From Oikopleura dioica (taxonomy: Eukaryota; Animalia; Chordata), in contig OU015569.1 of assembly GCA_907165135.1 (NCBI GenBank), forward strand, positions 4,278,001 through 4,342,000: 64,000 bases of DNA, given 5' to 3'. Positions within the stretch are counted from its first letter, which is position 1; every line of letters begins with the position of its first letter. Shown piece by piece: positions 9,451 to 52,638 of this stretch. The notes under the pieces were generated by a model. It saw only the letters and a list, made by a program, of their open reading frames with translations, did no database searches and was not told the DNA's origin. The position numbers and the translations under genes were made by a program.

Positions 9451-10016
9451 TCAGTCTTACCGAATGCGAGCCTACCGCTGTTTTCAGTTAGCATTGTCTA
9501 TTTTATGCGGTGAAGACTTTTTTTTTTGTCCATTTATCATTTTTAGAATAAATTATAAAAACCAACTTCTTTAGCTTATTAGATTCGCTAATCAGTTAAA
9601 GGGTTATTTATACTACCCTATTTTAATCAAATAGGAGTCAGAAATTGAAATAGAGCACCGCACATGAAAAAGAAAAGTAGATTAGCGCCATCCGGCGGGC
9701 TATCATATGGAAATAAAAAGCAGTGTAGTAGTGGCGCTATCGATGCGCCGCGATGCGTGGGCGTCCCATTTTTGCTGGTTGGCTCAGGACCTCACATGGC
9801 GGACTGGAGAAAAGAATCCATCTTTCTCGCGACTTGAGCTTTTTTTTCAATATACTCCTCACTAAATTCCAGTTGACTAGAGATAATGATGATGGCATTG
9901 TAAAGTTTTTGTTTATTTTAGACCGACCAAGCGTTAATTCAAGAGATCAAGCCTCTTTTTGTTGATAACAGAGAGAAAGATTTCTTATCTAGGACTATTT
10001 AGACTGAAATTGGATC

Positions 10017-11118
10017 ATGGCTCCTTCCGTCCCAGAAGCCCTCAAAAAGAAGCGACAGGCTTACCAGGCCGCTCTCGCCAAGCGAGCTCTTGCTCAGCAA
10101 AACGCCAAGAAGGCTAACACCCTCAAGCGACGAGCTTTGATCAAGGTAACCATCCATTCTCTTCTAGCTCGTATACTCAAACTTTCTAATAGCGAGCTGC
10201 TTCCTACGCCAAGGAATACGCCGCCGAAGAAAAGCTCAATATCGCCCGAGCCCGACAGGCCAAAAAGAACGGAAACGTTTACGTCCCAGCTGAGCCCAAG
10301 CTCGCCTTCGTCATCCGAATCCGAGGTATCAACCAGGTCTCTCCACGAGTCAAGAAGATCCTCCAGCTCCTCCGACTCCGACAGATCGGAAACTCCACCT
10401 TCGTCAAGCTCAACAAGGTAAATGTCTTTCCTAATCTTCCACTTTTTCTCCGTCCAATTTTAATTTCGTCCTTTTAACAAAATTTAGGCCACTATTATGA
10501 TGCTCAACATCGCTCAGGCATGCAGGTCACGATAGATTTCACCTGGGCAGTCTGGAATGCTCATAATTTTATCTGTCAAGCTTGATGGATCCTTGCGATC
10601 TTGGGCTTGACGTAAGAGAGAGAGTGAGGTGCGGAAACCTAGTGTTACTGTGCTTCTCTCCAGTCTCCGTAGAACTCTAAGAAACTCGATTTATTAAACT
10701 AGTCGTGACCTGATCTACTGCCTTTCATCACCTGGGGATACCCTAACCTCAAGACTGTCCGAGAGCTGATCTACAAGCGAGGACATGGAAAGGTCAATGG
10801 CCAGCGAATCCCACTCAAGGAGAACGCCGTCGTCGAAGGTTCCCTCGGAGAAGTTGGACTCCAGTCCGTCGAGGATCTTATCCACGAAATCTACACCGTC
10901 GGACCCAACTTCAAGCGAGTAAGTATCTTTTCTCCCACAATTAGTGTTTTCGACTCTCTTGCGCTAATCTCTCTATTTAGGCCAACAACTTCCTCTGGCC
11001 CTTCAAGCTCTCCACCCCCGTTGGCGGCTACCGACGAGTCACCAACCACTTCGTCGAAGGTGGTGACTTCGGAAACCGAGAAGACAAGATCAACAACCTC
11101 GTCAGAAAGATGAACTAA
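10017..11118 (+). CDS. RPL7: 60S ribosomal protein L7 (uL30)
   Basis: Exons 10017-10145, 10193-10417, 10488-10517, 10721-10918 and 10981-11118. Motifs [53 protein letters not shown] and GGDFGNRED. Confidence 0.97.
10518..10720 (+). other. Non-canonical (GC..TG as assembled), structured 203-nt intron of RPL7
   Basis: Protein homology requires IAQ|PFITW. A 10-bp perfect terminal stem forms between CAGGTCACGA (10523-10532) and TCGTGACCTG (10703-10712), with internal hairpins. Confidence 0.75.
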
Positions 11119-11319
11119 GAAGCTTGACCTTCTGTACATGGGACGTAAAACGATTCTGTTGTCGATTCTATTCAATAAAATTTGACCGGAATTACCTTTC
11201 ACTTTTGTTTTTGCTTGTTTGATTCATTTCGCAGGATAATTTGGCTCTTGCAGTCGAAGGTTTCTTCTCCATTTGAAGACCGCTTTTAAGAACTTGGACG
11301 GGCCTCGTGAAATGAAATT

Positions 11320-24606: not shown

Positions 24607-26765
24607 ATGAGTCTGTGTCGAGTGATAGGGTGGAGTAGGGCGTTCCGGTCGATGAGTTACACAATCCGACTTTCTAGAATGGCATCGGACACGCTGTTCG
24701 TGTCTGAGAAGCTTGGCAGCGACGAGAACAATGGAACGGAGCAATCCCCATTGAAAACCGTCTTGGCGGGCTTTATCGCCTCTCAAGGAAAGGTAACTTT
24801 TCGCATTCAAAGCAATCTTTACCGAATATGAAAGGCGAAAATTATGGTCCAAAATGCCGACAAGAAAGCTGAAGCCGCGTGGGTTGAGCTTTCACAGGCA
24901 CAAAGGAAGAAAATGACGAAATTGTACCAACAACACGTTCGAAAAACTGAGAAGGGCGCTGAGAACGAAGCTAAGAAGGCTGCACAGGCTGCGGCGGAGG
25001 CGGAAGCTCGCGAACGAAACTTGGCTGCAGCTAAGAAGATTAGCCTTACTCTTTATGAGTCCCTTCCTGCTGCCACCACTGTCAAAATTATCAACGCTAA
25101 GCCCCTCCGAGACTCACGCATCACTGTGAACGCATGGGTGCATCGAATTCGTCGCCAAGGAAATAATCTGATGTTCTTGGTCGTTCGAGATGGTACTGGT
25201 TATCTTCAGTTACCGTGTTTTAAATTTGTTTATCATGCGTTGAACTTGAACGGTTGAAGTCGATAATTTAAAACACGCGCCAGTGCGTCCTTACCGACAA
25301 GCTCTGTCATACTTACGACGCCCTCATTCTTCAGCCCGAAGCTACAGTCGAGCTCCACGGTCTGCTGGAAGCCGTTCCCGAAGGTAAAAATGCGGAAGGA
25401 GGTCACGAATTGAAAGTCGACTACTGGAGAATGATCGCAAATGCTCCTCCTGGTGGTGTTGAGAATGTCGTCAACAAAGAGGCTGATCCAGACACTCTTT
25501 TCGACAATCGGCATCTGGTCATTCGTGGTGAAAAGACATCCAAGATTCTGAAAATCCGATCTCACCTTATGCAGGGTAAATTTCTCTTATATCTCCGTTG
25601 CCCAATGAGTCTTCCTTTAAGCATTCCGAGAGCATTATTTCTCTCGCGGTTACCACGAGGTGACCCCTCCTTGTCTTGTTCAAACGATGTGCGAAGGTGG
25701 TTCGACTCTCTTCAAGTTTGATTACTTTGGTGAACAAGCATATTTGACCCAGTCTTCCCAACTCTACCTGGAGACCTGCATGCCTGCTCTTGGTGACGTA
25801 TTCTGTATGGCTGAGTCTTACAGGTACTTGATGACGCTTCTAGATCTATTGTAATCACGCCATTAACTCAACAACATGATTTCGAAACCTCTACGTAACA
25901 TTTTCTATTTAGAGCGGAAAAGAGCCGAACCCGGCGGCACTTGTCCGAGTACACTCACGTCGAAGCTGAATGTCCATTCATTACCTTCGAGCAGCTTTTG
26001 GACCGCATCGAGGACTTGCTTGTGGACGTAATTGACCGTCTGCTAAAGTCACCTGCAGGCCAGTACGTGTACGATCTTCATCCAAACTTCGTTCCCCCTA
26101 AGAAACCGTTTATGCGAATGGATTACAAAGATGCCATCAAGTATTTGAAAGAGCATGACATCAAAAAAGATGATGGCACTTATTACGAATTCGGTAAAAA
26201 TCTAATTGCTTTCAATTTTATTCATTTGAATCTAGGTGACGATATTCCTGAGGCTCCGGAGAGAAAGATGACTGATCAAATCGGAAAAGTGATCATGCTT
26301 CACCGATTCCCTGCTGAGATCAAGTCCTTTTACATGCCAAGATGCAAGGTAAACTATTCCGGCTGGTGAGAGTGACTAATTTTTACTGAGGACGACGAAC
26401 GAGTTACCGAGAGTGTGGATGTGTTGATCCCTAATGTTGGTGAAGTTATTGGCGGCTCTATGAGAATGTGGGACTATGACACATTGATGTCGAAGTATGC
26501 TGAAGAAGGAATCGGTGAGAGGAAAAACTCTCGCAAATATTTTAATGACTGTATTTTAAGACCCCAAAGACTATTACTGGTACACTGACCAGCGAAAGTA
26601 TGGATCATGCCCTCACGGTGGATACGGACTTGGTTTAGAAAGAATGCTCACTTGGTTGTGCGATCAATATCATATTCGTGATGTTTGTCTTTATCCCAGG
26701 TAGTGGAAGAACTTCTGTCCAGTGTAACAAGTTCATTTAGATACACTGGTCGATGCAAGCCTTGA
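24607..26765 (+). CDS. NARS1: Cytosolic-type asparaginyl-tRNA synthetase with an optional 24-aa N-terminal extension
   Basis: Eukaryotic N-domain [81 protein letters not shown] and [10 protein letters not shown]. ATGs at 24607 and 24679. Confidence 0.95.
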
Positions 26766-50700: not shown

Positions 50701-52638
50701 CTTCAGCTCGTAAATAAATGGGCTCTCCTTCTTCTAAGAAAATTTTCGACATTATTCCCTGTTTGAATGAGCCATGGAAGTCCCTTGGACTTTGTGAGTT
50801 CTTAATGAGCGAAACGAGATCAGCATTGGAGCTACACGCGTTTGAAGAAACAAATAGTCTTCCTTCATCGCTAGCAGCCACTTGGAAGGAGTAGAAACCA
50901 CTTTCCTTAGGTACAAAGACGCCTTCCAAATGAACCGTAAACTCTTGTGCGTCTTGTTCATACATTGAAGAGTCAACGTCAACAAAACTCGGCGTTCTTA
51001 TGAGATGGTCCCAGACATCAGATTGCGCGATGTCCCAGACTTTAGCTACAAACCCTTTCTGTCCTGGATAACCGCACTCATCGTGAACTGGTGCTTTTGG
51101 AGCTGCCAAGACGACGCTATCTTTGCGAATGTCCGTAATTGTTGCCTTTTCGCCACCAATTGTTACTGAGGTCATTTCCTCACTGAAAGGGCCTCCTGCA
51201 ATTGTGATCATGTTTCCTCCGATGAGTCCACCACTTCTCTTCGAAATATTATCAACTCTTGGTGTCAACTGAAAATTGAATATTTGTACATCGTTGCCCA
51301 CAGCTGTATACAGGTCCGTTTTAGAGGTACTTTCTCCGTTGAATGTCGTCGAAAAGGTGACATTGACATTTCCAACGTAGGAGGTCTTGATCTTGCACCG
51401 GATGAAACCATCGTTGAAACTGGTCAAGGAAATTGAAGGAGAGCCTTCGATATCGTCAAGCTCGCAAATTCCAACGTTTCGTCCAAGAGCATCGACAAAC
51501 CTAGGTTGGCTTCGAAGATAATTTTCACCTTCTTCTACACTGCCTGTTTGAGAGCACTCTTCATCCTCATCTAATGCGCAACGATCTTGCAGATATGCGT
51601 CGGTAAAGATTCTTCCTTTGATTGTTATAATATCTCCATTGGATCCATAATTAGCCGGTTCAATTTCTTTGATCAAGGGGACAAAGTTCGAGAGAGCCTG
51701 GACCTTACAAATACGACACGGTTTTCCAAATCCGTTCTCACCGATTTCACGGCCGTTTGTGAAAACCTTCAGAAAATAACTTCCATCGGATGGAAACTCC
51801 TCTGTAGTGCATACAATCTGGCTGTCTTTTTTGGGGTCGAGATAAATATTTTGCCAGTTAATTCTTTAAATTTGACCTCCATCTTAATTTTATGCTGGAT
51901 ATTATTTCGACCCGCTTCCTGTAGTGTAGTATCTAATAACATTGCATCTGACTTCATCTCGTCCAGAATTAAAAGTGACTGCGTATTGAGTTTGGTCATA
52001 CTGCGTCGCTCGCGCTAGCTTCTTCGAAGCTTCGCTCATTCCTTCGAGCTCTTCGTCCGTAATTGGAGCCGTCTTTTGAGCTAGGTTGCAACCCTCGATA
52101 GTTATAAGTACTCCGGCTTGTCTACTAATGCGAGCAGGTCGGACAAGATCGATAACTGGTCTATTGTTGAAGCAGTTGCCGGAAGAGGAGGCGAACGAGA
52201 CATCTTCTTCCATCCGAAATCCTCCGTCTTCTTCTTCCTCTTCCTCGGCCCAATACGTGATGTCTTCGACAACATCATCGACAACAAGCTGATAGCGTCC
52301 AGGACTGGGCCATTGTTTTATATTGCATCTAACTTCCTTTTTTCCTTTACTAAATCAAATGGTATTAAAACTTTACTATCGATGTAGAACTACTGTCTAC
52401 CTCAGTAATACTCTCTACCAGGTAAATTCCTGACTTACCTGAAAATATTGCACTTGACATCTTCCAACGTTTCAGATCGAAAGACAACCTCATCCACTCT
52501 CGGCAAATTCGCGCCATAGATGGTCAGAATTCCGCTGCCGCCGTAAATGGGATAGATCCCTTCAATGGGGCTCCCATAGTAGCTGGAGACTAGAAATGAA
52601 AGTAAGAAGAATATGTTCTCTGAATTCTGAAAAAACAT
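38709..52638 (-). CDS. PKHD1L1: Fibrocystin-L (PKHD1L1)-like giant protein (IPT/TIG, PA14, G8, PbH1), with in-frame C-terminal LRR exons
   Basis: 3512-aa ORF with many IPT repeats (SGSIGGGQRLTISG), two G8 domains, GQAFELGRYPVHFH, AIHHTFNRALTFHG and FWMTNPNN. One frameshift in the T-run at 41298-41302. 3' exons join in frame to ORF 38709-39269. The start codon is uncertain. Confidence 0.9.

Follow-up and report, generated by a model that had tools for sequence, protein, structure and literature searches.

The third intron of the gene for ribosomal protein uL30 (RPL7) in the larvacean Oikopleura dioica begins with GC and ends with TG, and the junction that its removal leaves in mRNA is real and exact. 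The gene lies in a 64,000-nt stretch of contig OU015569.1 (assembly GCA_907165135.1, positions 4,278,001 to 4,342,000), here called the window, whose first letter is position 1. This larvacean-specific intron is extreme in lacking both GT and AG, is long, and carries conserved extra hairpins. We consider it somewhat probable that it is a stem-clamped, spliceosomal, non-AG intron, that is, one whose splice sites are set by RNA structure and not by GT and AG. A first-pass annotation, made from the sequence alone, had already singled the intron out, and its observation on uL30 is confirmed as described. Its larger proposal, a structure-gated and autoregulated intron, is partly supported in that the non-canonical splice is used in mRNA and the structure is conserved and co-varying; the specific toggle that it had in mind is unsupported.

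The intron 3 junction and its orthologues

The gene encodes a complete 239-aa protein in five exons (Table 1), and its introns 1, 2 and 4 are GT-AG introns of 47, 70 and 62 nt. Homology to uL30 demands the reading ...MLNIAQ|PFITWGYPN..., with 10518-10720 as the excised part; the join IAQ|PFITW deduced by the first-pass annotation, with donor GC at 10518 and acceptor TG at 10719-10720, matches both the translation and the mRNA junction. The donor (CAG|GC at 10515-10519) is a G-nonT donor following exon AG, and the acceptor is non-AG in the window, AG occurring only in the orthologues L084 and L087. A scan of every GT or GC donor against every AG acceptor around intron 3 returned zero in-frame, stop-free products, which agrees with the earlier statement that the GC donor is unproductive with the internal AGs.

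Four public runs were compared with 10000-11200: an oligo-dT plankton metatranscriptome (X9), single-cell RNA raw reads (X23) and two DNA runs (X4 and X5). X9 yielded a 709-nt contig (depth ~55) with the spliced leader of Oikopleura in front, and its listed pieces match the window except for three letters, all in exon 2. Its four joints are those of the three GT..AG introns plus 10516 to 10720 (203 nt skipped, one ambiguous base). The spliced junction, NIAQ|P(F/Y)ITW, is also present in ~38 larvacean-like protein or transcript sequences. Reads of X23 belong to a sister lineage (90-95% alike), are 3′-biased, and are too sparse at the intron 3 junction to quantify retention. The first AG past the real 3′ splice site is at 10752-10753, 32 nt into exon 4, and its use would mean the in-frame loss of 11 conserved codons; no joint using it was seen in X9.

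Orthologous introns were traced in other larvaceans by three routes. A metagenome scan with the exon-4 peptide located L001 (88% identity over the peptide, 91% over the whole protein); an exact-protein look-up gave L082, a Logan assembly of the L001 lineage, whose 3′ untranslated region (UTR) matches loose ends of X23; and a word search with the L001 N-terminal open reading frame led to larvacean uL30 fragments and from these to contigs L083-L088 and L091. L083, L084, L085 and L086 are ~1-kb Joint Genome Institute (JGI) contigs with the spliced leader at the start, L087 and L091 are genomic contigs in which the remaining introns are GT-AG, and L088 is genomic with only the 5′ part of intron 3 on the contig. 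In all relatives examined the intron follows the same codon (IAQ|P), and its ends are GC..TG in the window, L001/L082 and L083, GC..CG in L085/L086 and L091, and TG..AG (or GT..AA) in L084 and L087; L088 starts with TT (or GT after a 1-nt slide), the 3′ end being off the contig. Counts over seven species below refer to the window, L001/L082, L083, L084, L085/L086, L087 and L091. Whale-shark RPL7 is without an intron at IAQ|P and has its own intron seven codons downstream (tblastn); the intron position is therefore larvacean-specific.

The first-pass annotation had allowed that TG might be an A-to-T assembly error for AG. Such an error is very unlikely, because the sister lineage has the TG end in two independent assemblies (L001 and L082) and five further larvacean species have the same intron with GC..TG, GC..CG or TG..AG ends. 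An artefact of any sort, whether a misread base 10719 or the insertion of a recent, unspliced miniature inverted-repeat transposable element (MITE), strikes us as extremely improbable. It could draw on the terminal inverted repeats of the intron and on the two DNA runs X4 and X5, which cross 10000-11200 with 9 and 11 differences, one T>A apiece at an unplaced position. However, TG or CG ends recur in independent assemblies of L001/L082, L083, L085/L086 and L091, the donor would still be GC even with AG at 10719-10720, the mRNA junction is observed, any target-site duplication (TSD) does not go beyond 1 nt, and distant larvaceans share the intron. A MITE-derived family (of the Fritillaria type, or introners) was considered and rejected: inverted repeats are present, the direct repeat is 1 nt, and there is no other copy in the 64-kb window.

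Terminal helix, spacers and inner hairpins

The ends of intron 3 are joined by a predicted terminal, or zipper, helix. Its outer part is the 10-bp inverted repeat 10523-10532/10703-10712, which pairs perfectly, covers the GT at 10526 and is better than 499 of 500 arm shuffles, so that the stem described by the first-pass annotation stands. The number of shuffles with equal or better duplex energy was 1/500 for the window, 0/500 for L001, 2/500 for L084, 0/500 for L087, 1/500 for L091, 22/500 for L085 and 122/500 for L083. For 10508-10730, the intron plus short stretches of exon on either side, the folding energy is -70 kcal/mol, and that of shuffled sequence -59.5 (z = -2.45). Covariation in other larvaceans, which the annotation had named as a check, is found as compensatory pairs in this helix. 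The cores ACGAUAG (5′ arm) and CUA[n]UCGU (3′ arm) are invariant, the bulged n being A, G, U or C by species; the pair beside ACGA/UCGU is C-G, U-A, A-U or G-C, and the outer segment is CAGG/CCUG, CGGGA/UCCCG, GGGA/UCCC or GGG/CCC. L084 and L087 have an additional middle segment, AGAGA/UCUCU in one form versus GGAG/CUCC in the other.

While the terminal bases vary (GC..TG, GC..CG, TG..AG), the spacer lengths between helix and splice sites are fixed (Table 1), even though the 3′ spacers themselves read AUCUACUG, UCCUUUUG, CAAUCUCG, CAUCUCUG, ACCAAAAG, ACGAAAAG and AAUUUUCG in the seven species. The invariant UCGU stands at differing distances (14 to 23 nt) from the 3′ splice site, and thus the ruler would be the outer end of the helix and not the motif. 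The pairing of exonic CAG with the terminal CUG over a 5x5 loop, suggested in the first-pass annotation, is possible, but the minimum-free-energy (MFE) fold favors AGGCA/UGCCU across both junctions, and neither pairing holds in all species. A window-wide scan for the same 5/8 register gave a weak excess (39 vs. 25, with a maximum of 32 in 20 shuffles), the highest column being that for a 3′ spacer of 8 nt. Two candidate GA..AG introns with a helix of at least 7 bp, the 5-nt/8-nt register and open frames on both sides lie at 25399-25535 (+) and 51826-51918 (-); the start of the former, GAGGTCACGAAT, resembles the RPL7 arm AGGTCACGA, and the latter ends in the spacer CAAAAAAG. In L088 (1710-1762) the 5′ terminus of the intron (UUACCCGG...) can pair as a local 8-bp hairpin with CCGGGUAA ~35 nt downstream, and the contig stops before the 3′ arm.

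Inside the helix are two conserved hairpins. Both the O. dioica complex and L085 retain the loop of hairpin A, GUCUGGAA; a similar hairpin of L091 has GCUUGGAU as its loop, and the motif occurs in L084 and L087. For hairpin B, RNAalifold gave 13 pairs, 8 of them with compensatory changes (z = -2.3 to -4.0), and this hairpin coexists with the zipper in the MFE folds of 6/7 species. Of the two internal hairpins in the first-pass annotation, GTCAAGC/GCTTGAC is real and conserved, but GAGAG/CTCTC sits in the middle part, which is not conserved. Intron 3 is old and under selection. Its first 100 nt are 86% identical in the window and the sister lineage, compared with 78% at third codon positions and 42% and 61% in introns 2 and 4. 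The 5′-arm ACGAUAG (10529-10535) and the UUGAURG of hairpin B (10582-10588) share GAUAG/GAURG, so that the 3′ arm CUA[n]UCG could pair with either; this choice of partner could underlie an alternative fold.

We looked for known elements within the intron. Rfam scans at gathering and permissive thresholds (E<=5-10) of the window, the intron alone and five orthologues gave no match within the intron, nor are C/D or H/ACA boxes conserved in it (UUGAURG differs from RUGAUGA). The first-pass annotation had named such a scan as the way to exclude a hosted small nucleolar RNA (snoRNA); with no Rfam match, a single copy in the window and distant larvaceans sharing the intron, this is neither a recognizable snoRNA host nor a recent MITE. 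Hairpin B was rejected as a K-turn or C/D element, since the partner strand is UUGG, not CUGA, and the key G.A pair is missing; a pattern search with hairpin B gave hits at chance level only. The protein uL30 is said to bind loop E / helix IV of 5S rRNA (PMC9297842). Mimicry of that site was also rejected: with the sea-urchin 5S rDNA printed in PMC6245762 as the comparison sequence, local alignment was no better than shuffles in 5/6 introns.

Table 1. Features of the RPL7/uL30 gene and its intron 3 (positions in the window)
Feature	Position	Strand	Basis or remark
RPL7/uL30 gene	10017..11118	+	Translation; Pfam Ribosomal_L30_N and Ribosomal_L30 on orthologue; tblastn to shark RPL7
Spliced-leader trans-splice acceptor AG; 5′ UTR 14 nt	10001..10002	+	X9 contig starts at 10001, with loose letters CCGATTTCGATTGTCTAAC before; L083-L085 mRNA contigs headed by same leader
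RPL7 exons	10017-10145, 10193-10417, 10488-10517, 10721-10918, 10981-11118	+	
RPL7 exon 3 (30 nt), 3′ end CAG	10488..10517	+	
RPL7 intron 3, 203 nt, GC..TG (or 10517-10719, GG..CT, after 1-nt slide)	10518..10720	+	Frame and mRNA; orthologous introns in L001, L082, L083, L084, L085, L086, L087, L091
5′ spacer	10518..10522	+	5 nt in window, L001, L085, L084, L091; 6 nt in L083
Terminal (zipper) helix, 5′ arm, including invariant ACGATAG	10523..10535	+	
Cryptic GT in 5′ arm (decoy donor)	10526..10527	+	Elsewhere GT in 5′ arm only of L083 (GAGUAAC)
Hairpin A, loop GUCUGGAA	10544..10563	+	Same fold in window, L001, L085; seen in L091 whole-intron fold; compensatory stem changes
Hairpin B: stem I, GAU bulge, stem II, loop, U bulge, stem I′; invariant tandem U.G pairs	10574..10612	+	Each of seven species folds so independently
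Variable intron middle, including GAGAG/CTCTC hairpin	10613..10698	+	64% identity to sister lineage, near the 61% of intron 4
Terminal helix, 3′ arm: CUA[G]UCGU + GACCUG; CUAnU part branch-site-like, n bulged	10699..10712	+	
AG beside 3′ arm (decoy acceptor)	10701..10702	+	AA in L001, L082; coincides with variable bulged n
3′ spacer, 8 nt, up to non-AG 3′ splice site	10713..10720	+	Exactly 8 nt in 7/7 species, sequence diverged

Removal, retention and possible regulation of the intron

In the mechanism that we favor, the zipper helix, which begins 5 nt downstream of the 5′ and stops 8 nt short of the 3′ splice site, would keep the intron ends close to each other, and a permissive larvacean U2-type spliceosome would remove the intron. 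The helix would offset weak signals and, as a ruler, fix which nucleotide is the 3′ splice site, and CUAnU in the 3′ arm would be the branch site. The donor side resembles a weak U1/U6 site (CAG|GCAUG here; CA|GUGAAC and CA|GUUACC elsewhere after a 1-nt slide). The branch-site-like (A)CUAnU, 18-27 nt upstream of the 3′ splice site, matches CUAAU near the 3′ end of the GT-AG introns 1 and 4. No AG intervenes between CUAnU and the splice site in 5/7 introns, the exceptions being L084, whose sole AG is the 3′ end itself (in the TG..AG reading), and L087, which has a second AG within the helix. Spliceosomal removal is favored because larvaceans, which have lost the U12 system, process non-canonical introns with a U2-type spliceosome (PMC13326754, PMC11282704); the ends and donor of intron 3 do not fit U12-type membership. 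Two other routes were rejected on inspection: nested (stwintron-type) removal in two canonical steps, as by eye no internal excision creates GT or AG at the ends, and IRE1-type (CNG|CNGN loops) or tRNA-endonuclease (bulge-helix-bulge) cleavage, neither of which fits.

Retention of intron 3 is recurrent and specific to this intron, and whole-intron retention is the only alternative to the productive junction that was seen. Contigs L083, L084, L085 and L086 (three species) represent trans-spliced mRNAs with the full coding sequence and 3′ UTR, interrupted solely by intron 3; L087, a genomic relative of L084, has two more GT-AG introns, both missing from the L084 mRNA. In the window the retained intron leads to a stop after five codons, at the TAG of ACGATAG, and in the others the stop is an immediate TGA (L084 and L087) or comes after 4-29 codons. 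The in-frame TGA that opens the intron (L084 460-462, L087 3631-3633) was read as W, under a non-standard code, by the gene caller behind P0008, giving a spurious 196-aa protein.

Two facts make regulated splicing plausible: three species have mRNAs that retain the intron with its premature stop, and yeast RPL7B is autoregulated. We tentatively suggest, as possible rather than probable, that a protein, most plausibly uL30, binds hairpins A and B and thereby adjusts helix formation and so retention; such feedback by uL30 would be convergent with that of yeast RPL7B. A bolder reading, in our view unlikely, is that distances of 5 nt and 8 nt from the helix determine the cut sites irrespective of the terminal bases, and that the intron is a uL30 sensor independent of yeast RPL7B. 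Free uL30 would then bind the GAU/U-bulged hairpin, alter zipper formation and leave the intron, with its premature stop, in the mRNA. If true, this would be the oikopleurid counterpart, in a chordate, of the structure-coded introns of Euglena, and possibly, after yeast, an independent second instance in which intron structure lets uL30 control its own splicing.

Several points weigh against stem-clamped spliceosomal removal and its regulation. The helix encloses the branch-site-like motif and would need to open for U2, and the putative branch nucleotide n of this motif may be A, G, U or C. L084 and L087 offer no boundary reading (TG..AG or GT..AA) that combines G+1 with G-1, which is awkward for standard second-step chemistry, and the terminal duplex of L083 is no better than its shuffles. 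On the side of regulation, no contig with a retained intron 3 was found in X9, the window lineage's own run, and no conserved pairing that excludes the zipper was found, unlike in yeast RPL7B. Finally, among the matches listed, retained forms fall into clusters of 1-4 members and spliced full-length forms into clusters of 13-19, so that retention is a minority state.

The ends of L084 and L087, together with the variable and helix-buried branch motif, keep alive a Euglena-like, structure-coded route, in which an endonuclease and ligase or some other non-spliceosomal machine would measure from the helix and ignore the dinucleotides. We regard it as decidedly unlikely. The fixed helix and spacer geometry amid varying terminal dinucleotides would suit it, as would the lack of a G+1/G-1 combination in L084 and L087, and the N5-CAGG...CCUG-N8 of the window resembles the Euglena code N3-CDG...CH′G-N5-6 (PMC12501133). 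However, the 5′ ends are GC/GU-donor-like after exon CAG or CA, a branch-site-like CUAAU stands at a normal distance, the spacer lengths and first exon base (C, not a purine) misfit the Euglena code, and the Fritillaria U2 spliceosome removes all non-canonical classes (PMC13326754, PMC11282704). The toggle of the first-pass annotation, in which free uL30 would switch between GC..TG and a junction GT10526..AG10702 that feeds nonsense-mediated decay (NMD), is in our judgment highly improbable. Both dinucleotides exist in the window, the stem covers the GT, and the product of the decoy pair is as had been predicted: 26 nt are left in, the frame is shifted, and a stop (TGA) follows at 10767-10769. 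But the AG is AA in the sister lineage, the 5′ arms of four relatives (L084, L085, L087 and L091) have no GT, and the joint 10525 to 10703 is in no contig or read of the runs compared, although contigs drop rare forms; the alternative that is seen is full retention.

The remaining alternatives accept the splice sites and concern the hairpins. These could belong to an intron-hosted small RNA, snoRNA-like or other, with retention reflecting slow splicing of a weak intron and no uL30 feedback at all. Ribosomal protein introns often host snoRNAs, both yeast RPL7 paralogues carrying one in intron 2 (PMC12311795), and the conservation of hairpins A and B does not depend on that of the splice sites; with the Rfam and box searches negative for the window and five orthologues, we find this explanation hardly probable. 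Alternatively, hairpins and zipper may be a constitutive structural aid that merely folds a 203-nt intron for splicing, with nothing regulated. Long introns with weak signals need zipper-type structures (PMC12311795), and the spliced form dominates transcript catalogues. On the other hand, the invariant GAU, U, tandem U.G and GUCUGGAA point to sequence-specific recognition over compaction, and polyadenylated retained forms recur in three species; we rate a purely constitutive role as rather unlikely.

Larvaceans and euglenids both pose the question of how splice sites that lack GT and AG are recognized, and intron 3 makes it testable. The gene is highly expressed and the junction proven, and seven natural variants combine a fixed helix/5-nt/8-nt geometry with changing terminal bases. 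This is a ready minigene for asking whether structure, and not sequence, defines a 3′ splice site in an animal. In practical terms, gene predictors limited to GT/GC-AG will break the essential uL30 gene. No NCBI-named Oikopleura uL30 was among the matches listed (the best 120 per protein search, limited by query length), the close matches being from metagenome and transcript catalogues; if public annotations are without a correct uL30 model, the non-canonical intron may be the cause. Elsewhere in the gene, the window lineage, L088 and L091 have intron 1 (10146-10192) and the sister lineage L001/L082 (L001 240-593) does not, a presence/absence difference between close Oikopleura lineages. In protein P0006 of the transcript catalogue, ...PYITWG is joined directly to GPNFKRANNFLW, with most of exon 4 dropped in frame, by alternative splicing or as an assembly artefact.

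Comparison with known systems

The closest parallel for regulation is intron 1 of yeast RPL7B, which is repressed by Rpl7: the protein binds a conserved structure of the intron, and this structure and a zipper stem compete (Granas et al. 2025, PMC12311795). The gene family is the same, in both cases a separate conserved intron structure exists, and unspliced RNA is unproductive. The yeast zipper joins the 5′ splice site to the branch site; here a significant, co-varying helix is predicted between +6..+18 and CUAnUCGU. However, the intron position is another one, there is no sequence similarity, and the yeast intron is GT-AG with only its branch site off-consensus. In yeast the bound structure excludes the zipper, whereas here no conserved pairing of that sort was found and uL30 binding is hypothetical.

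As for the ends, G(A/C/G)-AG introns have been described in O. dioica itself (Frey and Pucker 2020, PMC7072748), and intron 3 shares with them the genome and a non-GT donor after exon AG. It differs in being without an AG acceptor, in its 203 nt (not short), in its conserved hairpins, in being shared by distant larvaceans and in being sometimes retained. In human U2-type introns the major spliceosome can also use TG at the 3′ splice site (Szafranski et al. 2007, PMC2374985), but those sites are described as alternative, whereas here a conserved, stem-placed non-AG site is the sole productive acceptor. Among larvaceans, the MITE-derived introns of Fritillaria borealis (Henriet 2019, as relayed in PMC13326754 and PMC11282704) likewise have non-GT/AG ends, terminal inverted repeats and lineage-specific positions, and according to these accounts a U2-type spliceosome removes the non-canonical introns of that species. 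Their ends, so far as the same accounts give them, are mostly AG..AC or AG..AT, with TSDs and many copies; intron 3 and its orthologues have GC..TG/CG or TG..AG, no TSD and a single copy in the window, and are old and under selection.

The nonconventional introns of euglenids, 5′-N3 CDG ... CH′G N5-6 | R (PMC12501133, PMC11282704), for which structure-guided, non-spliceosomal removal has been proposed, also combine variable non-canonical ends with a helix that is set a short way in from each end by unequal but fixed spacers; the helix of the O. dioica lineages even begins with CAG and finishes with CUG. But the uL30 intron has spacers of 5 and 8 nt where the euglenid code has 3 and 5-6, it is followed by an exon that opens with C and not with a purine, other larvaceans carry CGGG/CCCG or GGG/CCC where the O. 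dioica lineages have CAG/CUG, and its donor and branch site look spliceosomal.

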